A stretch of DNA of 64,000 bases from Takakia lepidozioides (GCA_030704615.1 CM060732.1:74834001-74898000), one strand, 5' to 3'; positions 6,505 through 64,000 are shown, counted from the first letter of the stretch. The notes: generated by a model from the sequence alone, not told the origin. A program made the numbers and translations.

Positions 6505-7156
6505 GGAAGATAATAGGAATAATGTAAGAACTTAATGCACACGTGCAAACACTGACAAGATGGTACGCCGGTTTCTGGCATGTCAAATCTTCCCCACCCT
6601 CTCTTGAGAGTGACATGGAACCAAGGAGTGTCAACTCCAGTTGGGGTTACATTGGGTTACACGACGAGGTGTGTAACTCCACTTGGGGTTACATCGGGTT
6701 ACACGACGAGGTGTGTAACTCCACTCGGGATTACAGAGAATGGAGTAATGGAGTATAACTCCAGTCGGTGTAACCCACACTTGGTCTTGAAATTTGACTA
6801 AGTCCAATTTAGTTAGTTATAAAATGGACTAACCAGAGTTACATGAGAAACCGAGGTTACATAGGGTTACACCGATTGGAGGGTTACACCACCGGGGTTA
6901 CACTACAAGCGCCTCCCAACAAGAATTGAACCCTACACCTCGCCGCCTGCAACCCTATCACCTTACCATCATGCTACCCACCACAGCTTGCAACCCACTT
7001 CGATTTTTAAGTATTCAGTAGTGAAACCGAGGTAAGAGGGGGTGGGGAGGATTTGATAGGGGCCCCGCCAGAGGAGCCCAAGCCGCCGGAATTCGGCGAA
7101 AGTACCGTCAAAATACACGCGTCCATTAAGTTCTTACATTATTCATATTGTCTTCC
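6505..7156. mobile_element. Non-autonomous Mutator (MULE) MITE, 652 bp
   Basis: TIRs GGAAGATAATAGGAATAATGTAAGAACTTAATG and CATTAAGTTCTTACATTATTCATATTGTCTTCC. Perfect 9-bp TSD CAAGACAAT at 6496-6504 and 7157-7165. Internal 42-bp tandem repeats and GGGTTACA motifs. Confidence 0.92.
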
Positions 7157-37955: not shown

Positions 37956-38236
37956 GCCTCCGCTGGATCTGTTTATATCCGGTTTTTTTATTTTTGCACC
38001 TCCTCCGGATATATGAAGATAATAGGAATAATGTAAGAACTTAATGCAAGCGCGTCAGGACGGTCCAACCCTGACACCCGTACCGCCGGTTCTTCGCCTC
38101 CGGCAGACATCGAAAGGCAGCCGGCTGGGCTTGGTCAATCCCTCCCCACCCCCGCCCTCATCCCATCGGCGTCGTCGCCCCCTGCGTCGTCGTTCTGCGA
38201 CACCAGTCCGCTGCTTCCAGCAGTCCGCCAGTTCCC

Positions 38237-39890
38237 TGTAACCCCCGCTCCGGGTTCAACCATCACCCCCATGTAACCCTCTGTAACCCATATAACCCCA
38301 TGACCCTCTGTAACCCTCACCACCATGTAACCCTCTGTAACCCATGTAACCCTCTATAACATCGCAGAGTGTCACCCCCACCCCTATGTAACCCTCACTA
38401 CATGTAACCCTCTGTAACCCTCTATAACACCGCAGAGTGTCACCCCCACCCCTATAAAACCCTCACTACATGTAACCCTCTGTAACACTTTGCAACCCAT
38501 GTAACCCTATGTAACCCTCTGTAACCCATGTAACCCTCTGTAACACCGCAGAGTGTAACCCTCACTCCATGTAACCCTCTATAACCCTTTGTAACCCATG
38601 TAATCCTCTGTGACCCTTTGTAACCCATGTAACCCTCTGTGACCCTTTGTAACCCTCACCACCATGTAACCCTCTGTAACACCGCAGAGTGTCACCCTCA
38701 CCCGTATGTAACCCTCACTCCATGTAACCCTCTCTGACCCTCTGTAACCCTCACCACCATGTAACCCTCTGTAACCCATGTAACCCTCTGTGACCCTCTA
38801 TATCCCTCACCAGGTGTAACCCTTACCACCATGTAACCCTCTGTAACACCGCAGAGTGTCACCCTCGCCACCATGTAATCCTCCGTAACCCTCATAAACC
38901 CTCTGTGACACCGCAGAGTGTCACCCTCATCCCATGTAACCCTCACTCCATGTAACCCTCACAAACCCTCTGTGGCTCTGTAACCCATGTAACCCTCTGT
39001 GACCCTTTGTAACCCTCACCACCATATAACCCTCTGTAACACCGCAGAGTGTCACCCTCACCCCTATGTAACCCTCATTCCATGTAACCCTCTCTGACCC
39101 CCTGTAACCTTCACCACCATGTAACCCTCTGTAACCCATGTAACCCTGTGTGACCCTCTATATCCCTCACCAGGTGTAACCCTTACCACCATGTAACCCT
39201 CTGTAACACCGCAGAGTGTCACCCTCGCCACCATGTAACCCTCACTCCATGTAACCCTCACAAACCCTCTGTGGCTCTGTAACCATGTAACCCTCTGTAA
39301 CACCGCAGAGTGTCGCCCTCACCCCTTATGTAACCCTCACTCCATGTAACCCTCTGTAACCCATGTAACCCTCTGTGACCCTTTGTAACCATCACCACCA
39401 TGTAACCCTCTGTAACACCGCAGAGTGTCACCCTCACCCCTATGTAACCCTCATTCCATGTAACCCTCTCTGACCCTCTGTAACCCTCACCACCATGTAA
39501 CCCTCTGTAACCCATGTAACCCTCTATGACCCTCTATATCCCTCACCAGGTGTAACCCTTACCACCATGTAACCCTCTGTAACACCACAGAGTGTCACCC
39601 TCGCCACCATGTAACCCTCACTCCATATAACCCTCACAAACCCTCTGTGGCTCTGTAACCTATGTAACCCTATGTAACACCGCAGAGTGTCGCCCTCACC
39701 CCTTATGTAACCCTCACTCCATGTAACCCTCTATAACCCATGTAACCCTCTGTGACCCTTTGTAACCCTCACCACCATGTAACCTTCTGTAACACCGCAG
39801 AGTGTCACCCTCACCCCTATGTAACCCTCACTTCCTGTAACCCTCTCTGACCCTCTGTAACCCTCACCACCATGTAACCCTCTGTAACAC
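38237..39890. repeat. Subterminal minisatellite of (CCA/CTC)TGTAACC monomers with higher-order ~360-376-bp period
   Basis: 9-10-bp monomers plus an ACCGCAGAGTGTCACCCTC unit. The landmark TATCCCTCACCAGG recurs at 38801, 39161 and 39537. Confidence 0.95.
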
Positions 39891-40059
39891 CGCCACGTGT
39901 ACATCATACACGTGTAAACTATCCGCCGGCCGAATGGAGGTTTAAATAGAGGCCGAAACCCTAATTTGCTCTCTCCATCCGTTTTTCAAATTCCTAGCTC
40001 GCTCGTTTTTTTGCTTTGGGGCATCAGCTTTCTGCAATTCCCATGGTGCCCAATCGGCT

Positions 40060-40445
40060 TCACACATCAATGCGAAAGATTTGTAGTTCATTTAGTTCAG
40101 TATCGTCATCCCAGCAACATACAAGACAACGCTTTCCGCGCAGTGATCCGTCAAATCTATTACTACGGTTTTCTCTACGATTGATACGGTTGTCTCTATT
40201 TTTTTTCTGTCTCAATGTCATTCTTGTTGTTTTGTCACCGTCCCCGATGGCTATGGTATTCCTAAGATCCGCATTAGGAAAGGGTTTTGTTTCTTTCGGT
40301 CTAGCCATGCAAGCAGCCGCTCATTTGACGAGGTGCCCATTCACTCTCCTCTCGTGTATCTTTTGTTCACACACCAGCCGGGGCAGCCTACTCATCGCTA
40401 TTATGGATGCAATACGTATCGAATCATGTGTGTTTTGCGAGCACT
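40060..40445 (-). pseudogene. Degenerate inverted paralogue of the zinc-finger ORF at 41207
   Basis: GHLVK*AAACMARPKETKPFPNADLR versus RHIVDGMAACMARPKGTKPFPDAELK; contains a stop and a frameshift. Confidence 0.7.
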
Positions 40446-41206
40446 GTCAACCGGTTACATGTCTGATGGTTTATATGACTACCTCACGTGTGCTATGGTT
40501 ACACTCAGGGGGTTACACGGTGTTTTCTTTCTCAATACATGCTGGCTTGGTAGACGGTTTAGTAATGGAGGTTTAGATGGGGTTGACATGTTTGATGGGT
40601 TACGTGGATGTTGCGCTCGTGGAGCCACATAGGCTAGGGTTACATGGGTGGGGCGTTACATTGACCATGTTTACCTGGAGGTTGCATACTAATGGTTTGA
40701 TATGACAGGGTTACATCGATGTTGTGTTCGGGAGTCACATAGACTAGGGGTACATGAGGTCGTGACGAAGGGTTACATCATATGTGGGTACCTGATGGAG
40801 GGTTACACTCGACGTGCCTGGCATGCGGGTAACGGCCGGTTTGTCGCGCTCACAAGTGTAGGGTTACAGGTTACACTCCGCTATTCCGGGTGACACCGGG
40901 ATTGCAACTCATACACGTGTGAGTCAGTGCGGATATAATTGATTGCAAGCCGCCAGATTTTAATGAACCGCCGTCTTTCGCTTAACCGACGTGCCTTACT
41001 GGTGATATCTAGCTAGCTTTGTTCTTCGCTCTTTGATCATTGTTCAGTTTTCCCCTTCTCGTAGCCTTTCATATTCTTCCTACACTCCTTACTGTGCGTG
41101 CTCCCTGTTGTGCGTTCTTCGGAATTCTCTTGGTCTTGGTCTTTTCTTGTCTTGTCTTTTCTTGCTCTTGCTCTTCTCTTCTCTTCTGTCAGCTTTTTCT
41201 TTTGTC

Positions 41207-42586
41207 ATGGCTGATTGTTATTTGTTCCCTAGAGAGGCTACTATTCCATTTGATCACTTGAAAAGGGATGGCGAACGAGTTCGCTTCTGGTACACTGAGC
41301 ATGAGCATGCTACAATGATCGCGTACTGCCACACCAGGTGTAGAGAGGCCAAGGTGGAGGGAGCAAAGGGCCGGCCTAAGTTCAAATGTCCTTATTGTGG
41401 GGCAGTAAAGGTAGATAAGAGCAGATTGAATCGGCATATTGTCGATGGAATGGCCGCATGTATGGCCAGACCGAAAGGAACAAAACCGTTTCCTGATGCG
41501 GAGCTCAAGCATGCCATGGCTGTTGAAAATGTGATGAATTCTGTTCCAGCTTCTTCTGTTGATGCATATCATGCATGGATTCTGCAAAATAGGGTGGCTT
41601 TGGGTGAGATTGCAGATCCTATTGAAGTGCCTGCTGTTGTACCTTCTTCGGCTATTTCTGCTACAGAGGTTCCATCTTCTGGTGCTCCTGCTGTTTCTGT
41701 CCCTGGTCCTTCTATTCAGGTTTCTAACGAGAGAGACAAGCGGCGATTGAGCCCGCCTCTACCTGTCCCTATTGCAAAGAAAATCAACATTGGAAACCGG
41801 GGAAACCGGAGCTCAAGGTTCATCTTGCGAAAGCGAACTCCAGGCTCAATCCTTCTGCTACCGCATGGCCTTATTCCTCAGTTCCCATTTCTGAATGTCA
41901 ATGAGAAGGGGTTTTGGCCGGCATTCCAAGAATTTGTTGCGCGAGGCGAGGGCGCAGTCCATGCGACAGCTGCAAAATCAAGTTGGGTTCTATCGACAGA
42001 CAATCAAGTTGGATTCCCTGCCATTTCTCTGTTTTTCAAATTTTCGGCTGTTGTCTATCCATGTAACCCCTTGTGTTACCCCCCCCCCCCCCTTGTCTCT
42101 CCTGTGGCGTGTAACCCAGAGTGTAACCCACCTATAGAGGACCCCTTTCAAAAACCCCTATGGTGTGTAACCCACCTCTGTGTAACCCCGTGTAGCCCAT
42201 CTTGTTTGTAACCCATTTTCATGTGTAACCCCTCGTGCTGTAACCCTTTTCTCTGGTGTAACCCCTCACGCTGTATTGCGCAGGGAGCTCGATATCATCT
42301 TAGAAGGGATGATATGGACAGTGTTGTTGCTGCCCACAAGGCGTTTACTGCCCAGCCGGATCATGGTCCGTTAATGATAGAGGAATTGAATCGGGTGAAG
42401 GAGTATTTAGAGAGCATTGGGCATCCTGACATGCCAAAGCAGAAAAAGAAAAAGGGTGGGAAACTTACACGAGTCCATCAAGAGAGCCAAGCCTCACATG
42501 ATGATGACACGATGGACGAACTAGCTGTTGGCAATACCGACCTTGACGATGCCAGAACTTCAAATCCTCTTGTCATAACTATTACT
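41207..42586 (+). pseudogene. MULE accessory ORF with CxxC..H..C zinc-finger-like motif; interrupted by the CACTA insertion
   Basis: KFKCPYCGAVKVDKSRLNRHIVDGMAAC. Motif-filled intron at ~42008-42283. Second exon cut at 42587. Confidence 0.6.
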
Positions 42587-43889
42587 CACTGCAAGATATG
42601 AGCGTTTTTAGGACTACGGGTTTGGCGGAGTCATAAAAACTGCACTAGGTACATGACTACAGAGCGCTGAAATGCATTACAGTTTTAGTTTTATGACTTT
42701 GTAGTAATGGATATCACTACATGACTCCGGAAAGTTAGGGAGCATTGGTCAAACATTGTTGACCATGATGACAGGGATGGTTTATATGACTAGTGTGATA
42801 TGTTTGACTACACGTGGACGACGTTTCATGGAATCTTATGACTCCATGACTGAAGATGGTTTCAGAGCTCTACGACTACATCACTACACGTGTCATTTTG
42901 AAGGCACATATAATGCAAATAAATTGCCCATTAGGTTTAAAAAAGTTAAAATTTTTGCTAATAAGGTTGCCCATTAGTGTAATCGTGAACAGAAAGGAGG
43001 GCTGGGACTTGGCGTCTTTTTGTCTCCTGCGCCACACCACATAGCTGAGGGATGGAACGCGATGATAGCAGGATATGCAGGGGCGTGAGATGGAGGCGTT
43101 GAGCAAATGATGCACGAAGGAGGAGAGGAGGAGGAGACGAGACGAGACGAGACGAGGACAAGCGAGCTCGCCGTTCTTGGGACAGTCAGCTTGGTCTTAG
43201 CAAGCGTGTTTCAATCTTTGACTACTCATCTACGCCGTAGTGGTTCGATCTGACAGACCAATCCGACATTACCTGACTACAGACACAAGCAGCACACACA
43301 AGAGGTCATCGGTCAAATCCTCCATGGGTCAGGACAGGTCAAGGACAATGTGGTAGGGCACCTTCTTCTTCAACCTATTTCAGCCTGTGTTGCCCTCTCA
43401 TCAGACTCGGCCGCAAGATGCATATTGAATTCTGTAAGTTAGGTCGTTGGGTACATCTGTGGTCGTTTGGAGTGACTTTGGCAAGTTACTGCCAGTGTGG
43501 CAGCAGGGAAGTATCCAAAAACATATAATAGAGGTGAGGAGAAGCTGGGGTGAACACTTTCCGACCCCAATGGTGGGACAATGGAGACAAAAAGGCGAAT
43601 GCCTGTTGGACTACAGAGAGAAGCAGATGCATTTCAGATTGTGATAAGTAGGGTTGGGGTGTTTTGGGGAAGAACTCCACACCAGTATGGTTGGGGTGTT
43701 TGCTGGTAGAATTGTAGGCTGTCAGAGGCATGGATAGCTGAAGGAGCAGGGATAGAGTGTGGGTCCACATTCATCCAAGAGGGCTGGATTTCAAGCTCCA
43801 CATTACCTATGATTCCCTGTGGAAGGATAGGTACAAGAAACCTACATGGGTAGATGGTCAACTGGAAGCGACATGCTGTACTATATGTC

Positions 43890-45100
43890 ATTACTGTACT
43901 ATATGTCATTCCAGAGACTGTCATTGTTGGTCCATGTGTTTTACAACAATGCTATCAATATAAGACTCCTGGTTCGCATTGGAAGCTCAATCCCTGCAAG
44001 TTCATTGTGTGTGAAGCTCAAACTTGCGATTTGAAGGATCTTGTAGCCAAGTTTATTCAACCGGAAAGGAGAAATTCTGAAAGCTCCCAAATTTGATGTG
44101 GGCAAGCTTATGGAGGTAAGACTTAGCGTCCCTCCTCTAATGTAAGTGTTGGATAAGTTTCATTTAGTGTCGACCTTCACTGCATATATTGGCTCTTTTC
44201 TTGGCTGGTTTCATATTTTCTTGGCTGGTATGCTGTTGGTTGGCTTCTTTCATTTCACGTGTATAGTGGAAGGGGAGAAGTACTTTCCTAAGTTCTGCTG
44301 CAACAATGTCTTTTTCCAGCCTAGATGTTTTCGATGGATACAAATTGAAGTGTTTTGAATGTTGCTGCAATACTATAATAAAGTGGAGGGTGCTGAATGC
44401 AGTTGGCCTTGCTTCGTGCAGGCATAATCCAGGGAAATGTGGACATAGCTGAAACCCCATGATAGCATTTCCAGAGGACGGTGTGGATGGCCTCACAATC
44501 CAGCATGCAAAATCCATGACAATGTGGAGCTGGCTGAATGGGCAAACAGGTTAAGTGGCGAACAAGCCACGTCACTGGTAGATAGTTGTATGCTTACATA
44601 GTACATGAAAGCATACTATATGTCATTCCCGAAATTGACCATGTTGGTCCATGTATTTTACAACAATGCTATCAATAAAAGACCAATGGTTCGCATTGGA
44701 AACTCTATCCCCGTAAGTGGCTTGTGCGTGATGCTCAAACTTGTGATTTGAAGGATCTTATACCCCAGTTCATTGCAGAGGTCATTGGAAAAGACATTGA
44801 GAAGGCAACAGCCGTTATCTATAATCTACAGATCCCCTTCAATTTGATGTGGGAAAGGCGGCTGGCTGGAGGTCTAGTCTCACTTTCACTCATCTAATGT
44901 CAGTGTTGTATCCATTGCAATGTGGAGATGTTTGAAACAACATTGGAGCATTTCCAGAGGATGGTCTGGATGGCCTTTCGTGGCGTGTGCCGAATCCATG
45001 GCAAGAAAACATTGCAGGCAGAACCCATGGCAATGGTACCAGCACGGGTTGGTCCAAAGCCAATTGCAACAACAAATGAATAAAGGGTGCTGAAAGGAAA
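43890..45100 (+). repeat. Diverged tandem duplication of an unknown cargo coding module
   Basis: 43898-44100 resembles 44617-44852 (YVIPE..VGPC.LQQCYQ.K..GSHWKL.P). 44463-44492 resembles 44948-44977. Confidence 0.7.
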
Positions 45101-45225
45101 ACACTCCATAATTGATCATAAAATCCAGTGTCCAAGCATGATATCTTAATGGGAATGCGAAGGGAGTGTTACCACCTTAAACTATCATGCATGGTCTATA
45201 ACTGGAGTGCACAAATCGCGCATAT

Positions 45226-48200
45226 CTAATCTTCATCATCCTCATCTATGTCTGGAACATTACATGTATCACTGTCTTCATCACAGACTTCAACTTCTCC
45301 ATGGGTTGGCTGAACATCATCACCACGTATACGGGGTGCTCGGAGGTACAAGGAGGCCACCTGCTCTGGAGTAACCGGTACCGCTCGGCTGCATGTTGGG
45401 CCATCAGTAACCACAGTCTCCTCTAGTCTTTGTGGGGCTAACAATCCTTCCACTTCCGCCACATCATCATTATCAATTGATATGTCGCAGACCACTCTAC
45501 GTGCTCGGGGGCTCTTCTCTAGGACGACTTTCCACCCCGGCTCCTTTACACAATCAGAAAAAAACACTTGATCAACCTGGCCAGGAAACACAAAAGGTTG
45601 CTCAGAAGGTGGAAGCATACGGTTAAAATTGACAAGTGTGAAGCCAGCATCATCCTGCTTCATTGATATAGGTTGACGACCCACGCGACTCGCCCGTACC
45701 CACGAACACAAAAACACTATAGGCTGTGTTTGGCCATAGTCAATTTGCAAAATCTCCCTTATAAGACCCACATATCTTGTAGGTTCCTCCATGTCATTGC
45801 CTGAATTGTTGGTAATGGGCTGGTGCTGGAAAACAGATGAGACTCCACAATCAAAAGACACCATACTTGTTGTGTTCATGCCGGGGGATGTAACCCTGTA
45901 ATGGTTACCATACGCTGTCATACTCTTGAATGACAGGGCAGTAAATGATGGAGGCCTTGAAAGATCCAGTAATTCCTCATGTGTTGTAGGATCAAGCCCA
46001 TCTGATTGAATTGAGAGATGATCCCGTACACCTTGAGGGAGCCAAACAGCAAATGGAGGACAAGGATACAAATCAGGAGGGTACTGAATTGCCGTGGGAT
46101 TGCTCATGCCTTCCAGCCCTTGCTCCTCACGAAACAAGCGTCGTCTGGCTTCTATCCATGTGGACTCTGCTTCATATATCCTGTCACAATCCGAGGGTCA
46201 GCCAGGAGATTGACAGAGGTGGCGTGGGAGACTTGAAAAGACGCCATATGCCAACTAATGATAAATGACTAAAACTTGGAAATCTGAATGTCAATGAAGT
46301 AGATTTCTTACCCCAACATGACTGATAGACGAGGATGGTTCTGAATGATGTACTCATGTACAATATCATACAGGTCATTCAATTTTCGGGCTTTAGAACT
46401 TCCTTCCACAACTTCACGTTCCACAGATTCTGCCTCATCTGCATCCCACACCCTTCGTACACTTCCATCAAATCCTGCCATATACTCTGTGCAAAAACCC
46501 AATGCTTCTTCAAATTGGTATCCTTCTGCCATGCTCCCCTCGGGCCTTGCCATGTTTCTTACGTAGCCCTTCATATCTTTCATTGCCCGCTCCATGGGGT
46601 ACATCCAACGAGATGCTACGGGCCCGCATAAGTACAACTCATCCACTAGGTGAACAACCAGATGTGTCATCACATCAAAAAATGATGGTGGGAACTCCTT
46701 CTCTATAAGACACAGAGTGAGAACTGCTTCAGTTCTCAATTCCTCATACTCTACAGGATTCACCACTTTTGCACACAACTTCTGAAATACACGACATACT
46801 CGCAAAATGGCCCTTTGAGGACCACTTGGCATGAGCCCACGGATAGCAAGCGGTATAATTTGCTGCATGAGCACATGATAGTCATATGATTTCATGCCTG
46901 ACAACTTCTTCTTCACCACATGCTTTTTGAATGCTGATGCGTAGCCTGTTGGCACTTTCAAGTTCTGCACAATCTCCAGAAAGACTTGTAACTCAGCCTC
47001 AGTGAGGACATAAGGGGCAGGAGGCATAATTAACGTATCTGCTCTGTCAGGATCACGTTGTAGCCACAATTCCGGGCGCATCCCAAGTAGCTCCAAATCA
47101 CGGCGAACTTTCAATGTGTCTTTCTCACCAAAGATAGTTTTAATAATATTTTCAGCCAAGTTCTTCTCGCAATGCATTGCGTCAAACGTGTGGCGGATGA
47201 GGAGACCCTACAAAATGAACACATAAGCAATTGAGGCATTAACTCATCACAATTTAAACAGAAAACGCAAAAATATACACAGCCAATTTAAAGGAATTCC
47301 ATACTCAGTAGCGCCATTGAACATTCTTGACCTTCTATATGGATGATTGCGGGCCAAAAATCTTCGGTGGCCTAGGAAAACAATTTTTCCACATGTGTGT
47401 AACTGCTGTGAAGTCACCCCGGGTCCACAAGCTGGACAACCAGCATAACCTTTCGTCACTTGACCTGAGAGCAAGCCATATGCAGGGTAGTCATGGATTG
47501 ACCACATCAACACTGCCCTCAGTGTGAATTCGCGTTGACCACGAGGACGGGAAACATCATGAGCTGCAATCCCTCTCCATAGTTCCAATAGCTCTTCCAC
47601 TAGGGGCATCAGGTAAACATCTACGTTGTCCGAGGTAACAGACTCCTTACCAGGAATCAGTAGCGCTAACATGACAAAGATTTTTTTGGTCATTAACCAC
47701 GGAGGCAGATTGTAATTGACCAAGAGAACGGGCCATGTGCTCCAACTTGTGGATTGAGCTCCGTAGGGATTTACACCGTCTAAGGCCAATCCAAATCGCA
47801 GAGATCGTGGCTCTGCAGCAAAATCCGCAAATGTGGTGTCAATGTGTCTCCATGCTTTGCTATCAGCTGGATGTCGAACCAACCCATCCTGGCTCTTATG
47901 TCTGTCGTGCCATGTCATGAGGTTAGCGATCGATTTACATCGGTACATACGTTTCAACCTTGGAATGACAGGGAAGTGTCGCAATACTTTCTTGGGCACA
48001 CTTCCACGACCTGGAATGTTACGGGAACTGCGGCACACTGGGCAAATGTCTACATTCTCATACTCCCCACGGAAGAGTACACAACCACGCTCACAGGCAT
48101 GAATCATCGTGTACTGCAATCCCATCTTGGCAATCATGGTTTTTGCTTCATAGTGAGTTTTCGGCAATGAATTCTCTCTAGGCAAAAAACTCTTACGCAA

Positions 48201-49084
48201 CAATCCCAGAAGCTCATCCACAAATGCATTGGTGCACTTGTGGGTAGTGCATGCGTTCAGCAACGTCAAAGTTGCTTGCAGCCGGCTGATGGAGCACCCT
48301 TCAAAAAGTGGACATTGCGACGCTCGGAAGAGTTTATCATACTCGGGATCAACGTGCAGGTGAGCATTCTCATCAAATTCATTGTCTCCGGAATCGTCGA
48401 GATCATCGTCATGATCGGCAAATGTGTGATCGGTTCCACCATGAATGGGGTCTTCTGTTTGCATCTGCAAAGAGAAACGCTTCCTGCAATGCACGCTGCA
48501 TTTCTACCTCCAATCCACCACTCTCATCTGCGTTCTCTGTGACATTGGGCTCCCGCTGTGCCGCAGGGCCTTCGTCTTCATCATCTGAATATTCACATCC
48601 CTGCATCCCAATAGTCATCTTGTGAGTGGACCAACAACGATGTGACACTTGTTCATATTATGAACATATATGACTACATGACTACACATGACCAATGAAA
48701 ACACGACATGTGCATTAATTAAAGTGATAACGGAAGTGGCGTAGTCATACTCACGTCTGTATCTTATGACTTCTTGACTACAATCACCCAACGAAATGTC
48801 GACATGTGGAGAAGAGGATCGTTGCATTCAAAATTCAAACTAAAGTGCTGAAGGGAAAGTGGCGATCTTACCGGAAGAGAACAGCGTTGGAGAAGAGGAT
48901 CCCTCCCGTGTATCATGTAATGATTCCTCACTGTTTCCAACAAGAGTACTTTTCCTCCATGACACTCATCGCAGTTGCATAGCATTTTTGTATGCCCATT
49001 CCTTGTGGCATAAGCTTCTTCCATTCGCCATAGACGGTCATCTATTCTACGCCTACGCATCCGTTCGCCACCTGCACTGTACAT
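45226..49084 (-). pseudogene. CACTA TnpD/Tnp2-type transposase (transposase-associated, Transposase_21, DUF4218, DUF4216 domains)
   Basis: CNCDEC..VRNH, IHACERGCVLF, HPADSKAW, GLALDGVNP, YNLPPW, HDYPAY, DAMHCEKN, FFDVMTHLVVHL and WMYPMER. Spliced, with frameshift(s). Confidence 0.92.
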
Positions 49085-49645
49085 GCTTTGAACGTCACCC
49101 CTTCCCTCTTTGCATGCTACGCACAGTGCATTGTCTCTAGTTTTGCACCAGCTGCCAATGTGCTATTTCTATATCTATAGTATACTATAAGTATCGTTTC
49201 TGAGTGTCCATGGTGAAGCGGAAGGTCTTCGAAGTGACAGTCCCTCTCACTGAGTACGAGAAGTTCCGAGAGCGCCGGATTGCTGCCATAAAGGAGGTGG
49301 AAGCAACGTTCAAGCAGTCGATAGATGGGTGAGTTTAGTTCCTGACTTTGGATACCCACCCACTAAACTTGCGATTTGCCTTATCCTCTAACCTTCCTAC
49401 AGCGATCATAAGCTTCATAGCACAAATGGGGGCGAGTAGCTGCGACTTGTACAAACAGAGAGGCAAACAACATGCAGTGAGTGACGATTAGGTTTGAGGA
49501 GGGTGTGTCATTAGGCGGGAGATGTCCGCCGTCATTCGTGGGCAGGCATTACGTCCTGGTAGGGTGCGGCTGTGGTTCAGCGTAGGCTTAAGAGTATTAG
49601 GGTATGTATGCTTACATTTGTTTGTGATTGTTTGAGAGGGAGGTC

Positions 49646-52600: not shown

Positions 52601-53776
52601 CTCGCAACTTCTTCCCAATGGTGGACTATATTTTTGCAGCCCACACTAACCTGGTTTTCCAGTGGGATGCCCTTCACTGTGACAAGGATCCAGTCCTCCA
52701 TGCCGTAAGGGGTCTGATTCAAAGCCATTATATTTCAAGAACTTGTCTACAGTGTGGGCAGACTGGCCAGAATGGACTTATGAGGACACTGTTCTTGTTG
52801 ACGACACACCAAGAAAGGCGGCAAACAATCCTCCCTTCAGTGGGATTTTTCCAGAGCCATGGAAGGTGCAACCAGATTCACCAACTGATGAGTATCTAAC
52901 AGAGGTGTTGTGGCCTTTCTTGTGGAAGGCATCGAAAGCTGCCAGTATTCCCAAGTTTTTGGAGTCTCAGCCTGTTTTCGGACAACAACCATACAACACT
53001 GCTACTGTGAAGGTACAAACATTCTGACAGTGCTCCAGAGGCTACATTTTTGTGGGTTCATTCATTGCATTGCTTTCCTGGATGCTTCTCCTCGGTTGCT
53101 TGATTAATGCTAGGTTTTCTTTGCAGCTTTTCATGTTGGTTTTTTTTGTTTGATTCATACTTGGATTTTGTTTCTATTCACTATTCTTGTTTGCTCATTG
53201 CTATCCTGGTTGATCTCTGGTCTGTGACACATGAACTTGTGACAAACAAAGGTGATATTGTCGACAAGCCGGTACAGACGAGGGGCAAGAGTGTCGAGCC
53301 GGCGAGTAGCCCCCCAAAAGAGGTCTCACCACCACTGGAGACTGCAAATGGAGTAAGTCCAGGCCGTTGTCTTGTCTGTTATATTTTTTCCAACCTTGGG
53401 GCTCTCTTTAACTCGCAAATGTTGAGTGTCCTAGTCGTGTGTATGTCATGGGTTTTCACATCGTGTTCTTTTTTGTGTGGAGTTGGGATCACAGTTCAGG
53501 GTGGGTGACGAGGTTCGGTTGTTGGATGTGAACTCCAAACGGAAGTAATGTGGAGTAGGGCTGATTGTTGCTCTTCAAGGTGCTCTGGTGGGTTACGGGT
53601 ACCCTGCTGTGCCCCTTGATTATGCCTGTGTGTACATCAAAGAGGCATGTGTCAGTAACACCCCTCTACCATATGTGAATGGTGTTAGGAAACAGACCGA
53701 GTTGGGGCAGGTGGTTGGCCAGACAACACTTTGGAGTCTAAAGTTACTGAAACTTATGGAGCTGCGGAAGGGATAG
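49646..53776 (+). pseudogene. CACTA second gene (TnpA-like): PGY-rich region, Ptta/Transposase_24-like region, FCP1/NIF HAD domain and C-terminal Tnp1-like domain
   Basis: VWNKLVSYWQTEVFHKVSGNMKKAN; KHLLILDLNGLL..LRPRCYDFL..FEVAVWS..TVLVDDTPRKA..NP (frameshift near 52720); final exon ending GQVVGQTTLWS. Exon structure only partly resolved. Confidence 0.65.
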
Positions 53777-54730
53777 TCAGTATTGCACTGTTTAACAGAG
53801 TTCTTGATTCTAATAGCACTAGAACATACTAGCTACAACAATTCAGCCCATGTGTGGGCTTACTTGTTTTTGGCTGGGCCTTTTGAGGCATGGATTTTTT
53901 GACCTTGTGGCTTTTGAGGTGTCCATTGGGATATTGGTCTCATTTGGATTTTTGTAATGTGATTTATAGGGCTTGTATTGCCCTGTAGTTGACTATTTTC
54001 ATTCTCCTTGTGGTTGATAGTATGCAGGAGGGATCCATTCTGTTTTCATGTTGGAATTTCACCATGTAATGAAGATTTTAAATCATTTAATTCACTTTCA
54101 TTTTAAATAATAATATTAAAAATAATACCATTAAAAAAAAATCCAAGGCTGCAATCTCCTTGTTCTTTTAAATATTAAATGAAAACTAAAAATTAAAATA
54201 TGAACATTAAAAATATAAACTATTTCGGAAAACAATCTTGATGACACGTGGCATCACTCTTGCTCAAACCAGAACACGTGGCAGTATATGACACGACATT
54301 CTTTATCCATATTTTCACCACGTGTAAAGATCCGTAGTCATATATGCTAGTCATATATTTTGTCTATGTGCCACATGTCACATCTCAAGTGCAACATTAC
54401 AGGAGATAAGATTGAGTACAACAACAAGAGCATTTGAAATCTTACTAGGTTCAACAGCATGTTGACTGGCAGAATGCTCCAACAGCTCCAGCAGTGTTTG
54501 CATGACATTCCAGTTAGTGTATACTTTATGGGCACTATGGGTGCTGGTCATTTCATTTGCAAAACTGTCAGGCATGGCTTGCACACCCACTTACAGTGGC
54601 TCGACTTTGCTAGCAACAAATCTGGGCTAGATAGGGTTTTCTGGTCAGTGGATAAACCACAATACTGTATTATCCCCATACCAGCATTGACATATGACAC
54701 ATGAAGCCTGATCCTTGGCTACGTATGCAG

Positions 54731-55727
54731 GTTCTGCTTTTATCCCCAGGAGCTTGTACTGGAACTGCAGTGGCCATCACGCATCATCAACATGCAGATA
54801 CTCTGCCACGAGTTCAAGGTAGTTTTTTCTGCTTTCACCCGTCTGTCTTTTTTTTGCTCTGCCATCTTGCTGCACAATTTGTCGATGTAGTCTGATCCTT
54901 TTGGTAAGGAGTTGGCCCCTACTACCTCTACAATGCCTTCATATCTCAGGTTATGCTTGAATACAGTGGTCACCTGTAACAGAGAATGTAGGATGCTAGG
55001 ACACACCATTGAACACCTTCCCAGGTTTTCAAAGAGCAGCCTAGGAGGCAGTAAGATTTCTGGTTTTCACTATTGTGAATTAGCGGAAGCGAACGTTCAT
55101 AGGATGAATTGCCAATGGATGTCTCCTTGGAACCCTATCTGCCAGCAGAGGATGTGGCAAGTTTCAGTTGCTGAACCCTTTGAAGGAAGTCACGGCAATT
55201 TCTTTCAGCTCCTGTCCATTCTAATCCAAATGCTCTTGTTGCAGATTCCATCAAAGGTGGAGGTCTTCGTGAGTTTGATGATACCTTATGTGCATAGTGA
55301 GCAGGCTGTTGGAAAGATGAAGCGCCTTGGGTAGACCTTCCTTTGCTTCTCCTTGTTGTACACGTCTTTTCAACTATTGACTGCACATGAATAATGCTTT
55401 TTCTGTCTAATCCATTTGAATGCTCTCTGCTTTATTGTCAGTGAATGTGTGTATGTCTGTGGATAGTTTGTTTCTTATTCCATTGTCTCCCTCCCTATCT
55501 TCCCTTGGACAACCCAAGCATCATCCTCTTTATTCTACTTTGTTCAGACATGTTTCAAACTCTTAAATTTTTTCTCATTGTACTTCAGATACTTGTCACT
55601 GGATCCCAATGATCGCAGTGGGCATCAGGCAAGGGAGCTCAAGAGTATTTATGTAGACTCCCCAGCAGCAGTTGTTTGCCTGGTGCTCCATAATTGCTAC
55701 ACCAATGAACTCAATGTCTACAATCAG
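54731..55727 (+). pseudogene. CEP104: Three-exon fragment of ciliary/centrosomal protein CEP104 (N-terminal jelly-roll domain)
   Basis: Exons 54731-54818 (FCFYPQELVLELQWPSRIINMQILCHEFK), 55245-55330 (IPSKVEVFV..KRLG) and 55589-55727 (YLSLDPNDRSGHQARELKSIYVD..NELNVYNQ). GT-AG introns, phase-consistent. No flanking exons found. Confidence 0.85.
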
Positions 55728-56147
55728 GTGTCCATGTTGACCCGTGGCTTTGTTGTTGTGTAGATTTGTGGCTGAAGCATCAGATATCACTTTGAGGCTT
55801 TCTTGTGTCTGCACTTTGATGTGTACAATGATGAGTGTATTGTCTGTTGAGCCTTCAATTTATTCGTGCTGTTCTCTGTTGTGTTTGCAAAACCACGAGT
55901 GAATTCCAACGGATCTGGAACAACCAAACCTTTGATTCCATCTACAGTCACTACAACAGATGAGCGTTTTTATGACTTCACATATGACTATTTTTTCAGT
56001 CTTATATGCGTTCATGACTACATCACTCTGTAGTGAAAAAAACCCTGTCATAGCGACTAGTCTTTAGGACTGCGCTTTGCAAGTCATATCCATGACTGCT
56101 TGCGTGGCACCTGGAGTCCTGCTGCAGAGAGGGTTGCAGTCACAACT

Positions 56148-56420
56148 ATATGACTACATTGTCTGTTGAGCGTTGCCTACATGGAGAGGCTTCAGCGGGA
56201 CACGTGCGCCACTGCGCAAGCGACACGTCATGTATTCGTCAGGGGATCATATGACTATATGTCTGCAAAGTGATGCCTACATGGAGAGGCGACGGATGGA
56301 CACGTGCGCCACTACGAATTTGACATGTCACAACTTCTTGCCATGATCATATGACTACATGTCTGCACAGTGATGCCTACATGGAGAGGCGCTAGCGAGA
56401 CACGTGTGCTATGGCAGATT
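56148..56420. repeat. 100-bp tandem repeat x3 in the CACTA subterminal region
   Basis: GCCTACATGGAGAGGC at 56175, 56275 and 56375. Each unit contains ATGACTA and CACGTG. Confidence 0.9.
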
Positions 56421-56438
56421 TCACACGTGGTGAGTCAA

Positions 56439-59400
56439 ATGGAGAATCTCACCAAACCGCACGTTGGACCGCCACCACTCCTTTTGAGAATTCTGGCCCA
56501 CAACGATGTAAGAAATCATGGCAGGTCAGTTTCCCAAACGCATCCCAGGTTGGGGTTCACGACTGAACTTCTGGAAAGTGCTCTTACGGCCTCAAAGGTG
56601 AAGGACCTGGTCGATGAGTATTACGGCTTTAGTCTGATGTACTTTGCACAACCTGGTGACGGAATTGCGACCTTGGATTCTGAGCTCGAAGATTTAAGAT
56701 CGAGTTTGAGTACAGAAGAGTGGGGTGACCGGTCAATTAAGATCAACGGAGCTATACAGTTTTGCAAGGCAAGCCGTCGTCGCGCCGCCCATCACTTTGC
56801 GATCCAACAGAGAGAATCGTTTATCCAGCTTTGGTGTTGTGGCCTCTTCAGCGAATCACCAACAGAAATGGACTTCAATGCGCGTTTGGGCATCCAATAT
56901 ATGAGAGACCTTGGGTCTGTAGTGCCTTGGTATCTCTGTAAGTGTTACTCTATCCACTGTCACCCCTCTCGTCGTGTAACCCCTTTGTGTGTAATCTTGT
57001 AATCATTGTAACCCTCGCTATCTATGACTTTGAATCTGGAGATGCTGGGTTGAACCCTCGATGCAGCAATGTAAGTATTTGTCAGGATCATGTGGTCAAC
57101 CTCTCTCAGAATGACCCAGCCTTCGTGGGTCCCATTGATGCGCAGGGTGACACTGCAAGGGGAGGATGCCCTGAAACCGAGGGTTACACTGCACCTGAGG
57201 GTGACACTGTGCAGAGAGGAGCAACAGGGAAGGAGGGTTACACTGCACCTCAGGGTGACACTGCGGATACCGGTGTGGCTGACAATGCCGTGAGGGACAT
57301 TGTCGTGGGTGACACACCATTGCCCGTGAACACTGCAACTTCCGTTGAGAGTGACATTGACATGGGTTACACTGATAGGGGTGACACCCCACAGCCAACC
57401 CACATGGCAGATGTCAGTGAATGTAACACTGTCATGGATGACATTCCACTACCACTAGTCGTGGAAGGTGACACTCCTTTGCCACGGCCACTAGTCGCGA
57501 CGGATGACGGTCTTCCGCTAGTCAACATGGTCTTGGAGGGTGCGGAGAAGGGCGACACAATCAAGGATGGCATTGAGGAGGTTGATGCAAAGAAGAGTGA
57601 CATCGACATGGGTGACACGGGGAAGGGTGTCACCGAGGAGGTTGTCAGTTGGAAGGGTGACACAAAGCAGGGTCACACTGAGAAGCGTTTCACTGTGGAG
57701 AGTCACAAAGAGAAGGATGTTGCGGAGCATCTAGACACTGAGAAGAGTGACACACATAAGATTGTTACTCAGCAGAGTGATACTGGGAAGGAACCCGATG
57801 AGAAGGGTGACACTGATAATGCGGCCAAAGAGAAGGGTGACACTGAGACCAGTGACACTGAGAAGGTAGCCGGAGAGAAGGGTGACAATGAGATGCGTGA
57901 CTCTGAGGAGGTAGCCGAAGAGAAGGGTGACACTAAGAAGAGTGACACTGAGGAGGTAGCCGAAGAGAAGGGTGACACTGAGAATCGTGACACTGAGGAC
58001 GTAGCCGAAGAGAAGGGTGACACTAAGAAGCGTGACACTGACAGGGGTAGCACCGAGGAGGTGAGCTGTGACACTTCTGCCCTTGGTCAATCACCTCCCC
58101 AGCACGTCTCAGACGAGGGAGTGCAGTCTTCAGCACTTGTAGCAAACTCAGAACAAGGCACCTCTGGCTCAGAAATTCCCCCTACCGGTGGCATTGTCAG
58201 GGTTGCAGAGAATCCCAGGAGGTCAAAACGGCCGCTTGCTCAAAGAAAGCGGTTGGCTGAACCCCCTAGCGCTGACAAAGAAGTATCTGTTCTTGTCGCA
58301 CCCAAAAAACAGCGAACCAAACCGAAAGGCAATAGTGCAGGGGTCTCGGAGGTTGACGTTGTCCAGCAGCAAGAGGTCCTTGCCAAGCACTTGCGGGAGC
58401 GTTCGAGGTACCTCATTGTACTTTGATCCTCTCTGATTTTGAATATTGATTATAACTCTTGTATGATGCATCGTAATGTTCGTAATGTGCGGTTTGTTGT
58501 GCAGACTAAAACAAGGGTACTTGACAAAGTTCAGAATGGTGTCGGACCCTCCTGGGGCGCCCGAAGTGAAGTTTTATTATGGCGATGCCTTCCTGGCTTC
58601 TAGTCCGTTACAGTTTTACTTGGAAGAGACAGATTTTGAGCCGATGTATAAAATAAGAGCAACTATCACAGATGCATTGCTCTCGGGTTACAACAAACTT
58701 CTGGAGGCCAAATTGTTTAAGGCTATCGCACCTGAGTTTGTCATCTGTGCTCTTTTCCAATGGCATGTCATGCGTACCAATGGTAACGATCTGCAGACGC
58801 TATTCAGGTTGGTGCAAGAATGGTACACTCAGGATGCCCGAGGGATGGTGTTCACAAAGAATCGAGATCTTGTGGACGTGGTTGTCATCCCTATTGTCTT
58901 CGAGTAAGTAATTTCAGCGTTGACTGAGCATGTTGGGTTACACTCCTGTATTCTAGACTGAGTTGCACTAGTGACTGCTGACTAGTTGTGTAACACCGTT
59001 TAGAGTTACAGTACAAAGGGTTACACTACTAGGTTACACCACAGCCGGGTTACACCACAATGGGTTTCATTGGAGATGTTTTTTTCTATTCTGACGTAAC
59101 GGCTTTATTTGTGTTGCAGTGATCACTGGAGTGTTGCTGTTTTAGAGCGCCGAGGTCGGATAGTACATTTGGACTCCCATAAAACCATTGCCCAACCCAA
59201 ACTCATTGAAGGAATTTTGCGAAATTTTGCCATAGCATTCTTTGATTTCATGCGTGGATCTGATGACTTCAGTTACGTCATGGAGAGGATGGAATGGTTT
59301 GAGGCCAGTGTCCCCCAGCAACGGAGCTATTGGGAGTGCGGCTATTATGCACTTTGTTTTGTGCAATTTTACTTGGAGTGGAAGTTTAATGTGAAAACCA

Positions 59401-59540
59401 CAGAAGATCGAACCCGTCATAGGCGGGCGTTTACTGCAAGTTGGTTCAACGAGTCAACCATGATATCTTCCCGTACTCATATGATTAGTTGGCTGTGTGA
59501 CGAGATGGACAAAGACTTGGTCAGATGGCCAAAGAAATAA
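56439..59540 (+). CDS. 3' part of MULE-borne Ulp1/C48-like (SUMO-protease-like) gene with acidic KGDT repeats
   Basis: Last exon 59120-59540 has DHWSVAVL..HLDS..VPQQRSYWECGYY (H-D-Q-C intact). Upstream exons at ~58505-58903 and ~57088-58407. The 5' part is disrupted by the CACTA. Confidence 0.75.
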
Positions 59541-60930
59541 ATAGCGTCTCTTGATGCATTTTTGCTTCTATGTGGTTTGTTCGTAACACTTCACAGTTTG
59601 GGTTTCATGCAATGGGCTTACATGGGGTTACACCTTATAAGGTTACATGAAGTGGAATCATAGACAAGTACTTGGGTACACCTTTGGGCCTTGGGGCAAT
59701 GGGCTTACACTCTGTGGGTTCACACATAAGTGATGGGTTACACCATGCCGGGTCTCACAACGTGGAGTTACACTTATGGGTTACATACAATGGGCCTAGG
59801 GTTACATGGTTGGGCCTTCCTGGCTATGTCAGGGTCACGTTGCTGAAACAGTATACTTTCGTGGCATGTAACCCCACCTCGACTATGCGCATTTGTTTTA
59901 TTTTTTTATTTTTTTCGCACTGAAGTGTTTGTGCACTGAAGTTCTCAGATTTATACTACATGGGGTTACATACATGAGGGCTATGTACAATGGGTTACAT
60001 ACGATGGGGTCACAATAGTGTGGGGGTAACATCTGGTCGGGCTACATACTTCTTGGAGTTACAACACTCTGGGTTACACTCACTCAAGAGGGTTACACAG
60101 TTCTAAGTTACACTGTGCACAATGAAAGTGGGCAGGGTTGCCTATACAAGGGCTACGTGTCGTGGGGATACATAAGATGGGGTGATGTAGCATCGGGGTT
60201 TATAGCGTGCACCCCAAATTGTACAATGGGTTACATGCGATGGGGTGACATCAATGGGGGTTACATGTGGTCGGGATACATACTTCTTGGGGTTATACAA
60301 CAACAAGTTACACTCCGGAGGGCTACACTGGTCCATAACATAGGTTGAACGGAATGATTATCTATCTCATGGATTACACGTCCATGGGTTACACACAAAT
60401 TGGGTTACACATAGAGGGGTTACACATACAGGGGCTAGTGTTGGTGACTAAAGGTGCTCGACTTCAGCATCTTCCCACTCTGTATTGAAGGGTCATGTAA
60501 CCCCGGCAAACTAACCCAGACCCTGTAGTCACATTGTAGTCATCGACTTATAATTCTCAGAGTTACACCACTGACAGCAATAGTCTATGGGGTTACATAC
60601 TGGGTTACACTGTTGATAGTTACATTGCAGTTACACTTGGAGTTACACCACAATGAGTTACACTGAAGAGGTTCACACTCATCTGTGTTACACTGTGTGG
60701 AGTACCACAGATGCGAGTTACACTAAGTAGAGATATGTTACGTTATGAAACCCCAGACAGTGTAACCCTGCGGTGTGTCACCCCGGCCCATGGGTGTCCC
60801 ATTGAGTGGGTTACATAGGTTGAATGTGGATAGAATGGCAAAGTGAATAACAACCCATGAACAGACATGTACTTCATATTAAACTTGGTGATCACAAAAT
60901 AAGTGTCATTGCCAATGGACTCAATGGTCA

Positions 60931-63801
60931 CTAACTACGGAACCGGTCTACAAAATCTACTTTCCTGGCAAGGGACATGTTGTTTCCATCATCATTTTTT
61001 ATGAATGGAACTGCTTGAAGAGGGTGCAACAGACCTTTGTCGATTCTAACTTGTAAAGTGTACAGCCTCCCACGAACACAACGAAGCTCGGCAAGCAGAT
61101 GTTTGCGCATTGTTTCACTCTCATTGCCAAGAAGCGACAGGGACTTCATCTCAGATTCAATTGATGAAACATCTGATGGCTCCTGCCGACCACGCTGGGA
61201 TGATGCTGAGCACTCCGTAGGCTCTGCTAGATTCACAACTTCCTCCTCTGCATCAATATCTGGAAGTTCAACATGTGAAGACCTCCATGAATGGTCCCGA
61301 GCTTTGTGCCACAGAGCTTCACAATAAGCCCTTCCTTCAGATTTGGCTTCATCAATTGAAGAACGCGGATTTGATGTTTGCACAAGTTACCCTTCAAAGC
61401 CCATGGACAATCGCAACAAGCCCAGGTGGTCGCAGGTGCATAGATTGTGTAGCTTCGACCGGCCGTTTGAACACTATCCACAATCGCCGGATGACCATGA
61501 ACAGTGGGCAAATGAACATTGACATCAGGGATCTCCCTTGCAGTCCAAACAACATTACTGATAAATTCCTCCTGTCGTACATTCCTTTTGAAGCCTTTCG
61601 ATTTCAAGTTATCTCTATACCAATAGTGGGTTAGAACAGGACCCACGAGTTCGCTGATCAGCCAATCGATTCTCCTGCCATCAAGCCTTTGCTTTCCTGA
61701 GCGTAAACGAGCCTTCAAATTTCCGTGCCAAGATTCAATTGCAGCATTAGTATCCTGACTTGCGTGGGGAATATAACGAACCCCCGTGATCCACATGCTC
61801 AGTTTTGGGACCCATTCCATTCTGATGTAATGTAGGAAGTCACGCGCAAGCGGATAGGAATAATTCAAATCTTCCAGTCGCTCCAACGCCCACTCTTCTG
61901 GGGTGACTCCCACACAGGCGTTAATGCCGTACATTACGTCGCCAAGCTATTTCAAAACAGCATTGCGAGTGTATGGATCGGGCATCTTACGCCACGAATG
62001 TTTCAGCCAAGCGCGGCGAACATGCCAAAGGCATAGAAATATTGCTACGTCCCCAAACGATTCCCTGCATGCACACACATCAAATGCCACCCAATCCATC
62101 AGTGTAACTCTTGTCAGTATAACTCTTATCAGAGGAACTCTTCGCAGTGTAACTCGTAGAAGTGTAACTCTTCAAAGTGTCACTCTTAGTAGTGTGACTC
62201 ATGTAACCCCTCGTGCATCTGGTCATGTAACTATCAGTGAAACTCACAGCAGTGTAACCCAACACATATAACCCCTCGCAGCGCTGTAACGCAATCCATG
62301 TTACACCGTGTAACTCTCAGAGCGACCCAACCCATACAACCCTCTGCGATGCTCCCAGTGTAACTCACAGGCTATAGCAGTGCAACCTAATCCATGCAGG
62401 ACTGCAGATGACACGCCGTGTAACTCGCAGTGTAACCCTCTGTCTACCTCATAGCAGTGTAACCCTCGGTCTAACTCACATCAGTGTAACCCTCCGTCCA
62501 ACTCAAGGCAGTATAACCATCTGTCTAACTGGTAACCCTCAGTGTAACAGACAGCACTGCAACCCAATCCATGTAACCCCTCAAGCAACTGACAGTGTAA
62601 CTCCAAGTGTTACAGGCAGCAATGCACCCCCTCGTGTAACTGGCAGTTTAACTCTTACTGTGATTCTCAGTGTAACTAGCAGTAGTGTAGCCCGATCCAT
62701 AAAACCCCTCGTGCATGCAACTTGTAGTGTGAATTACTGTGTGACTCAGAACATTGTAACTTCTAGCCATGTACCTGATAACATTGATTTCTGCGTCTGC
62801 ATCGTCGACAACAAAAGCATTTGGCCTCCAATCTGGTTTGCTCTGAAGAAGTCGGTCGCGAAGACGTTTTATCCAGGGGCTCAGGTCAGTCGTTTTGTTT
62901 CTCGCTGATATAATATAAGCAACAGATATGCCGTTGAGCCATTTGTCGAACACCATCATGGTATACATTGGGAACTGCAATGTCGCAATGGTACAAAATG
63001 AATAAGGTGAGTGTTATAATATTGGCAACAGTTGCATGGCACTCACATTTCAGAATGCAATGAAAGGTAAAGCGTGACACGAATACCTTATTTTCGTTGG
63101 TCCCAAATATTGCATCGCATGATACCACACGGTTGTGTCCCAGGTCGATCATTTTCTGTTTTTGCCACTCCGTTTGTATTCCAATTACGAACTTCAAATC
63201 ACCCGCCACTGGCGCTGTCTCTTCATGGTAGAAGAAGACGCTTTCAGGATTGCTATCGACCCACATACGTACACTTTGTGCATTATCTGGATGTTTTTTG
63301 TAACTCTCAATCGCAAGCTTATCGGCAATGTTTCTCACGTCGTACTCGAACAAGAAACAATCGCGACTCCACTCCATGCCTGGCTGAGACGCACAAGCTT
63401 CCTGGAGCTGTTGAGTGTGTTGTGTCATAATCATAGCTGGAGATAGGCCACTGCGAAGACTATCGACGATCCATTGTTTCATATCTTGGCTGAGACAAGG
63501 GGCATGCACGAATCGCGAGAAATGGGAAGAGGGGTCAGCTGAACCATGACATGGCTTTCCTTTTGCATCCACATGCTGTTTCTGGAAGTATGTGATGATT
63601 GCCAACTATGAATCTAGAAAACACTGGCCAACTTTGAAGTTACACGTACACCCACGTTTGTATGATTCTCCGAAATCCGCTGCCTTACGTCTGATTCGCT
63701 TGACTGGTTTTTGATTATCGGAGGCTGCTATCGGTTTTTCTTTCTTCTTCACAATCGGCGGGTCTGTGCGCCTATCTATCGAGCCGTAGCAGCAGTGGTA
63801 C
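60931..63801 (-). pseudogene. MULE-domain/SWIM transposase (upstream exons continue off-window)
   Basis: KRGCTCNF, FVIGIQTEWQ..SCDAIFGTN, FVVDDADAE, LCLWHVRRAW, TNAAIESWH, RRIDWL and SWIM CDCPWALKGNLCKH. In-frame stops (63606, ~61948) and a frameshift near 61380. Confidence 0.9.
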
Positions 63802-64000
63802 CTGCAAAAAAAGCATATAAAGCGAGGAGGGTTACCGCCATATACGACTTTGCTAGGCCAGCAGAAAGAAGTGGGGCTGGGAATGTTATACAACCCTCAT
63901 AAGTGACTTACTTATGCCACTGACGATAACTGTTTGCACGCGGTGTTGTCAAATCTGGCAACTCACGGTACCTTCGATCTTGAACATAAAATTGGGTCTT

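Follow-up and report, generated by a model that had tools for sequence, protein, structure and literature searches.

A stretch of 64,000 nucleotides from Takakia lepidozioides (GCA_030704615.1 CM060732.1:74834001-74898000), referred to here as the window, contains a Mutator-like element (MULE) whose non-coding DNA is coated with one short word, RTGTAACYC. The window has a G+C content of 45.8% and zero Ns. The element carries a transposase gene and a convergent accessory gene, referred to here as the helper, and it is interrupted by a nested CACTA transposon. Its right end lies beyond the window, and only a left candidate for the target-site duplication (TSD), CCGGATATA, is visible. The word is also present in a miniature inverted-repeat transposable element (MITE) in the same window.

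The element and its cognate MITE

The ends of the element and the MITE are as follows.

38005-38013: left copy of the putative 9-bp TSD, CCGGATATA, directly abutting the terminal repeat; the right copy lies beyond the window
38014-38048, plus strand: left terminal inverted repeat (TIR) of the MULE, starting at 38014/38015
6505-7156: cognate MITE of 652 bp, with 41-bp terminal repeats that are 90% complementary, 11 strict motifs and 12 TGTAAC cores

The element is classified from its sequence as a TIR-bearing MULE that belongs to a multi-copy family. A 9-bp TSD is a hallmark of Mutator elements, and the MITE is flanked on both sides by a perfect 9-bp duplication, CAAGACAAT. The left terminal repeat of the MULE is identical to the left repeat of the MITE at 34 of 34 positions and has 3 mismatches to the right repeat. 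The terminal repeat itself holds TGTAAG, a one-mismatch version of the word's core. The TSD of the MITE and the shared TIRs bear out the original prediction of a Mutator-like element, and the probable SWIM finger and the relatives of the transposase are in keeping with it. Its description as giant is overstated; the MULE part in the window is only 12.1 kb, and the remainder is the nested CACTA.

The host DNA to the left of the element (37970-38013) contains TATATCCGG and, 26 bp further on, its reverse complement CCGGATATA, the putative TSD, so that the element has inserted into a small palindrome.

RTGTAACYC coats the non-coding DNA of the element

The word was searched on both strands as RTGTAACYC, and its expectation was taken from dinucleotide-preserving shuffles. 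There are 116 matches in the window, compared to a shuffle mean of 2.03 (standard deviation 1.53, maximum 9). The element proper (38014-42586 and 56433-64000) holds 104 of these, the 652-bp MITE at 6505-7156 holds 11, and the last is in the nested CACTA at 45888. The TGTAAC/GTTACA core is found 201 times in the window, with 172 occurrences in 38-43 kb and 56-64 kb and 12 more in kb 7. Similarly, GGGTTACA/TGTAACCC is present 117 times in the 12.1 kb of the element versus once in the 51.2 kb outside. The result does not depend on a chosen word; in an unbiased k-mer contrast of the element, minus its big array, against the rest of the window, GGGTTACA, GGTTACA and GTTACA rank top or near-top at every word length, and GGGTTACA occurs 49 times in the element and once outside.

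The word avoids coding sequence. With approximate exon limits, the density of the TGTAACYC 8-mer is 0.83/kb in the exons of the element versus 20.8/kb in its non-coding DNA, and it is still 13.3/kb there when the subterminal array is removed. Outside the element, two copies in 51 kb (0.04/kb) are about the chance level. The nested CACTA holds one RTGTAACYC and two looser TGTAACYC in 13.8 kb. The coating is real; it tracks the element and the cognate MITE and stays clear of exons, of the nested CACTA and of host DNA. The original prediction had stated that the word fills a set of named compartments, follows the boundaries of the element, recurs in the cognate MITE and is essentially missing from the CACTA. 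The counts support each of these statements, and every named compartment contains the word. The blocks are listed below.

38237-39893, plus strand: subterminal array, with 85 TGTAAC cores on the plus strand and 0 on the minus strand; 10-bp basic unit TGTAACCCTC
40454-40875, minus strand: upstream block of 10 cores, all opposite in orientation to the array
42062-42262, plus strand: block in the zinc-finger gene intron, with 9 cores on the plus strand and 0 on the minus strand
56975-57030: block in a further compartment named by the original prediction
58935-59054: block in the Ulp1 intron, with 5 GRGTTACA, 3 of them strict RTGTAACYC
59627-60815: block in the spacer between the convergent genes, with 28 cores on the minus strand and 3 on the plus strand, many of them dispersed rather than tandem
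62103-62760: block in the transposase intron, with 19 cores on the plus strand and 2 on the minus strand

The density per non-coding compartment is about 13-50 copies per kb. The three introns and the 3' spacer, which are far from the ends, hold 59 copies at 13/kb. Core counts per strand reveal near-complete strand purity in the five main blocks. When all sites were aligned on TGTAAC and scored for information content, the informative positions around the core were -1 (G or A), +6 (C more often than T) and +7 (C), and the flanks, apart from those in the big array, were random. The form used in the transposase intron and in part of the spacer is TGTAACTC, which lacks GGG. The repeat periods also vary. 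The subterminal array has a 10-bp period within a 376-bp higher-order unit present 3.4 times at 92% (Tandem Repeats Finder), the zinc-finger gene intron has periods of 26 and 33 bp, the 3' spacer 15-16 bp, and the transposase intron 15, 27 and 30 bp. Since the periods vary by compartment and conservation is limited to the core, the blocks do not derive from a single longer unit by copying.

Directly 3' of the 1.65-kb array, at 39941-39965, are a TATA-like TTTAAATAG and a canonical telobox, AAACCCTAA (about 39957). This region may be the promoter of the helper gene.

The genes, the family and the decay of this copy

The gene models rest on open reading frames (ORFs) and splice consensus, and the exons were searched singly. 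The genes and the insertions that interrupt them are the following.

41207-42049, plus strand: helper exon 1, a 281-codon ORF with one C2H2-like finger, C60-x2-C63-x12-H76-x7-C84
42050-42283, plus strand: inferred helper intron (GT..AG, read from the sequence), with 9 motif copies on the plus strand
42284-42586, plus strand: helper exon 2, cut by the CACTA insertion
42587-55886, plus its right end at 55949-56432: nested CACTA of about 13.8 kb, not part of the motif system
55887-56432, minus strand: inverted segment of 546 bp, composed of 59 bp of helper DNA and ACT (55887-55948) and the CACTA right end (55949-56432)
56433-56937, plus strand: inferred helper exon 3, an open frame
57086-58410, plus strand: helper exon 4, an acidic repeat region of about 40 GDT/GYT/SDT units followed by a basic tail resembling a nuclear localization signal
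58505-58905 and 59120-59543, plus strand: exons of a Ulp1/C48 protease, with 5 GRGTTACA in the intron between them
59544-60930, minus strand: spacer between the convergent helper and transposase genes, with 31 motif cores at variable spacing
60931-64000, minus strand: MULE transposase, its N-terminus off the window, with a probable SWIM finger and C.WH and D..E signatures
62076-62790, minus strand: transposase intron of 715 bp with 21 motif cores

The helper appears to combine three parts. At its N-terminus, the finger of exon 1 is matched by phmmer to multi-C2H2 proteins at E 3e-6 over residues 53-80 only. A 98% identical ORF, P0001 on contig L001, was found in an independent run; its cluster has a single member, and it reads through the inferred intron at 42050-42283 unspliced. 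The middle of the protein is formed by the repeat exon. Exon 4 lies within a 494-codon open frame and contains a 45-bp tandem repeat present 5.4 times. Its repeat codons (57086-58060) spell a variant of the motif, GGTGACAC/GGTTACAC, that encodes G-D-T and G-Y-T, and GGTGACAC is found 13 times in exon 4 and 0 times outside the element. The original prediction had placed the GTGACAC variant in introns. The variant is present, but most copies at 57.1-58.1 kb are coding, as they fall in the open 494-codon frame of GDT/GYT repeats. Exon 4 is either a motif array that has been turned into an exon or a set of coding repeats that double as candidate binding sites. The C-terminal part is the protease. 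Its exons match Pfam Peptidase_C48 (PF02902) at 23.1 bits (cut-off 20.7), and the H, D, Q, C tetrad is intact when aligned to the catalytic residues of SENP8. The element thus carries both the Ulp1 and the zinc-finger ORF at 41207 that had been attributed to it.

Other searches of the helper returned little. Exon 3 has no Pfam, PDB or protein-database match. A word-indexed protein search with exon 3 and the Ulp1 C-terminal exon gave no relatives, though this search was length-filtered and is silent on longer fused relatives. An ESM Atlas feature search with exons 1 and 3 gave only sub-threshold, unrelated or unnamed clusters. The AlphaFold2 single-sequence models (predicted local distance difference test scores of 47 for exon 3 and 34 for exon 1) were too poor for fold comparison. 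Because no spacer or promoter-like gap separates the zinc-finger frame from the next frame, a single transcription unit is likely, and the zinc finger, the repeat region and Ulp1 are probably one helper gene.

In loose contig ends from two or three runs, other family copies carry additional motif-bearing DNA at 57021/57023, at least about 140-200 bp of it, that the window copy lacks. The boundary between the intron and exon 4 has therefore probably been deleted in the window copy.

The transposase is recognized by eye from a WRKY/FAR1-like CxC finger and from D...D..E, C.WH and CxC..CxH signatures in its frames. Its SWIM domain scores 19.3 bits in Pfam, slightly below the 19.6 cut-off, and the MULE domain (PF10551) has no Pfam match in the window's own transposase exons. 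Eleven database relatives are 35-51% identical, and one of them, P0014 (51% identity), has a faint PF10551 match. One contig among these relatives looks like an element without introns from a different eukaryote.

The helper gene has a word depth of about 2000, compared to about 80 over adjacent single-copy DNA; word depth does not equal copy number, and this contrast at best points to a family of a few dozen copies. Within the repeat exon, family copies differ by indels of 6, 15 and 24 bp that all preserve the frame, which supports exon 4 as coding. In non-coding parts the indels measure 1, 4, 11, 16, 25 and 31 bp, and such length changes show a turnover of repeat units. The motif is kept, with whole-unit indels, in high-depth family contigs of two studies, and in these contigs the 3' spacer is conserved with 16- and 31-bp unit indels. 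The second copy from the independent run (L001) also keeps the word, with 10 GGGTTACA in 1.5 kb.

The copy in the window is decayed. The nested CACTA, which is identified by Pfam Transposase_21 (8e-72), DUF4218 and DUF4216, is inserted in helper exon 2. Its terminal repeat begins at 42587 and not at 42584 as had been proposed, since 42584-42586 is the ACT target duplication. The right terminal repeat of the CACTA is in direct orientation at 55949. An opposite-strand joint between 55887 and 56433 is present in high-depth contigs of two studies, so the 546-bp segment is inverted only in the window copy; this joint also confirms a separate observation on the CACTA in the original prediction. In intact family copies, exon 2 continues directly into the DNA at 56433. 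The transposase has an in-frame stop, TAG at 61947-61949 on the minus strand, just upstream of its SWIM-bearing part. With a split helper gene, an inverted segment and a transposase stop codon, this copy is not a working system itself. Relative to family contigs, it has A or T for G or C 36 times and the reverse 11 times, a bias that would be the expected outcome of methylated-cytosine deamination in an old, silenced copy.

Two parts of the CACTA stand out, 51835-53027 and 54701-55885. The CACTA carries an NIF/CTD-phosphatase-like ORF (PF03031), and its word depth is about 80 (single-copy) in the interior at 54.7-55.9 kb and 10,000-40,000 in the terminal region, which suggests that this CACTA, of a very high-copy family, has taken up host DNA.

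Possible readers of the word and comparison with known systems

It is quite possible, at somewhat under an even chance, that RTGTAACYC serves the family as its own array of binding sites for a protein that the element encodes and that keeps cognate copies accessible. The enrichment over shuffles, the contrast between exons and non-coding DNA, the conservation of the core only, the strand purity of the blocks and the retention of the motif across copies favor this binding-array reading, as do the in-frame variation of the helper's repeat exon, the intact catalytic residues of Ulp1 and the precedents of VANC, AtMu1c and TnpA. The family would use the word as a cis label in all of its non-coding compartments, MITE included, and a sequence-specific DNA-binding protein from the element would read the array. 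The first candidate reader is the helper protein, with its C2H2-like finger, variable repeat-rich region and Ulp1 SUMO protease. The second is the transposase, which could read the word with the WRKY/FAR1-type finger in its N-terminal part. By binding many sites at once, the protein would gather on cognate copies only, where it would keep chromatin open and counter methylation or heterochromatin, possibly via local deSUMOylation. The bound protein might also help to assemble the transposition complex. We tentatively place the helper finger first and the transposase finger second, and we think it unlikely that the reader is something else. The transposase gained weight as a reader because the AtMu1c transposase by itself is reported to bind its ends and reduce methylation, and because TnpA derives from a transposase DNA-binding domain (2026 preprint 10.64898/2026.08.24.746577).

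Several findings weigh against the binding-array reading and against the helper as its protein. The Pfam matches of exon 1 to zf-C2H2_4 and zf-Di19 are below cut-off (E about 0.005-0.01), and phmmer gave no homologues of exon 1 beyond its own family among 1.84 billion representative proteins, barring generic C2H2 repeats. The two copies of exon 1 differ by 6 non-synonymous versus 1 synonymous change; given this ratio and the broken copy, no purifying selection is visible. When the intact junction is rebuilt, the zinc-finger frame read straight through ends at a TGA near 56487, and thus a fusion to Ulp1 needs a predicted splice. Spliced joints are absent from the contigs of four runs, and no listed run that contains the stretch is recorded as RNA. 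The frame that opens next already overlaps this TGA at its start, and TTTTGCAG at 56434 would make a good acceptor; no phase-compatible splice that convincingly links exons 2 and 3, or exons 3 and 4, was found. Part of the size of the big array is due to a recent higher-order duplication of 376 bp. Lastly, the coating was not seen in the contigs (1.9-4.3 kb) of 3 of the 11 transposase relatives, a result that is uninformative.

Three other explanations do not involve the helper as a reader. The word could be a subterminal binding site of the transposase for synapsis and excision, with the internal copies being by-products of minisatellite spread. Precedents for such sites are the TnpA 12-mers of En/Spm and the AAACGG repeats of Ac. 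The largest block is indeed subterminal, 220 bp from the terminus, the terminal repeat holds the one-mismatch TGTAAG, and the non-coding MITE keeps the word, as expected of cis sites for mobilization; an N-terminal WRKY/FAR1-type finger could also read 6-9 bp, and the AtMu1c transposase sets an example of end binding that lowers methylation (preprint). Nevertheless, we regard this explanation as unlikely. The 59 copies distant from the ends, at 13/kb, are unlike classical subterminal sites, a protein bound at internal sites would either do nothing for the synapsis of the ends or impair it, the copies in the MITE have no mirror-image arrangement, and both the core-only conservation and the strand purity speak against it. 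Neutral satellite dynamics, in which a slippage-prone unit was seeded once and spread by unequal exchange or gene conversion without any reader while selection cleared the exons, would account for the tandem and higher-order repeat structure, the gain and loss of units between copies, and the C-rich, telomere-like, expansion-prone composition of the array. Under this process it is harder to see why seven compartments share only an 8-9-bp core while their spacers are unrelated and their periods differ, why many copies are dispersed (e.g., 59627-60815), why each block is pure in strand, and why internal copies reach 13/kb; we consider it improbable.

The word could also be read by a host factor, such as a TRB-type Myb protein that binds telobox-like AACCCT, or form a G-quadruplex on the GGGTTACA strand, with no element-encoded reader. 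Such a role is ranked low, as very improbable, because the invariant part of the word is TGTAAC rather than GGG or any G/C run. The TGTAACTC form that occurs in the transposase intron and in part of the spacer lacks GGG altogether, and the word is family-specific within the window. What speaks for a host factor or a G-quadruplex is that the array unit TGTAACCCTC contains AACCCT, the plant telomere and telobox core, that a true telobox, AAACCCTAA, lies just 3' of the array around 39957, and that GGG runs every 8-10 nt would fit the G-quadruplex consensus.

The binding-array reading has its closest parallel in Arabidopsis, where VANC is an element-encoded protein that binds repeated motifs and removes methylation. 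The targets of VANC21 are present at high density and in the same orientation within blocks, as tandem repeats in introns, upstream regions and spacers, and copies gain and lose units (Hosaka 2017 PMC5735166). The VANC21 motif is YAGTATTAY and the VANC6 motif is AGTTGTMC (Hosaka 2017 PMC5735166; Sasaki 2023 PMC10398659). Like the VANDAL elements that encode VANC, the Takakia MULE has a transposase plus accessory genes and one short, dense, family-specific word that is uniformly oriented per block. Its word likewise forms tandem repeats in introns, upstream DNA and spacers and is absent from exons, repeat units are gained and lost between copies, and non-autonomous relatives carry the word. The variable tandem peptide repeats of the helper, which vary in frame between copies, recall those of the VANC variable regions.

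The proteins differ from VANC. VANC proteins carry DUF1985 and DUF287 (PMC5735166), and neither domain gave a Pfam signal at E<=5 on any exon of the Takakia element. A structure of VANC has been solved (PDB 9LNK) and is MAIN-like, and VANC is reported to be dicot-specific (PMC13547354). The VANC21 chain did not come up when zinc-finger exon 1 and helper exon 3 were searched against PDB sequences. The candidate reader in Takakia is instead a single C2H2-like finger without known relatives, and the family, known here from sequence alone, sits in a non-seed plant. Moreover, VANDALs are described as non-TIR elements, whereas the Takakia family has clear 34-41-bp terminal repeats. Of the proposed VANC-like system, the cis layout stands, as it matches that of VANC targets; the likeness does not extend to DUF1985/DUF287 or the VANC21 chain. 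The further suggestion of a deep-branching version of the VANDAL system is not supported, as the family has TIRs. Because VANC similarity is lacking and TIRs are present, the system would be an analogue of the VANC system and not a deep-branching member. The Takakia family thus looks like a candidate analogue that evolved separately and resembles the VANC system in its cis architecture and in the type of its predicted accessory fusion, which would combine a DNA binder, a variable repeat region and Ulp1.

The fusion itself has a counterpart in angiosperms. Certain KIU genes there are reported to be fusions of VANC with a captured Ulp1 that act on motif-bearing relatives, and the angiosperm Ulp1 capture is dated to about the monocot/eudicot split (2026 review PMC13317346). 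As in the Kaonashi/KIU MULEs, a Ulp1/C48 domain in Takakia is found in an accessory gene inside a MULE; unlike the VANC-Ulp1 fusions, the predicted Takakia fusion joins Ulp1 to a zinc-finger and repeat protein. Given the date of the angiosperm capture, the Takakia Ulp1 would be a separate capture. TnpA of En/Spm is reported, like AtMu1c, to bind motifs and remove methylation, and binding by these proteins gives sequence-specific activation and hypomethylation of cognate copies (preprint 10.64898/2026.08.24.746577). The proposed Takakia system is similar in that an element-encoded protein would act on repeated short sites of cognate copies, including non-autonomous ones. It differs in that TnpA and AtMu1c sites are limited to terminal repeats and subterminal DNA, whereas the Takakia word also fills introns and the 3' spacer.

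Taken further, bryophyte MULEs may have evolved sequence-specific self-protection independently of VANC, in which a fusion of a finger and a SUMO protease reads a private 9-bp word and removes SUMO-dependent silencing locally. We regard this version as doubtful. If it were true, the target and the variable region of the reader would expand together, since that word also makes up the repeat exon of the reader.

Experiments in Arabidopsis have established that transposons can counter silencing in a sequence-specific way, through VANC and lately TnpA and the AtMu1c transposase. With a 9-bp word, a MITE and a few dozen copies at best estimate, the Takakia family is a compact test system. The window copy provides a natural broken-copy control, and it displays a helper repeat exon written in the motif's own letters. 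If the self-protection reading is true, the same cis architecture with an unrelated, SUMO-protease-fused reader would suggest that this strategy arose more than once, and SUMO removal would be tied to escape from silencing.

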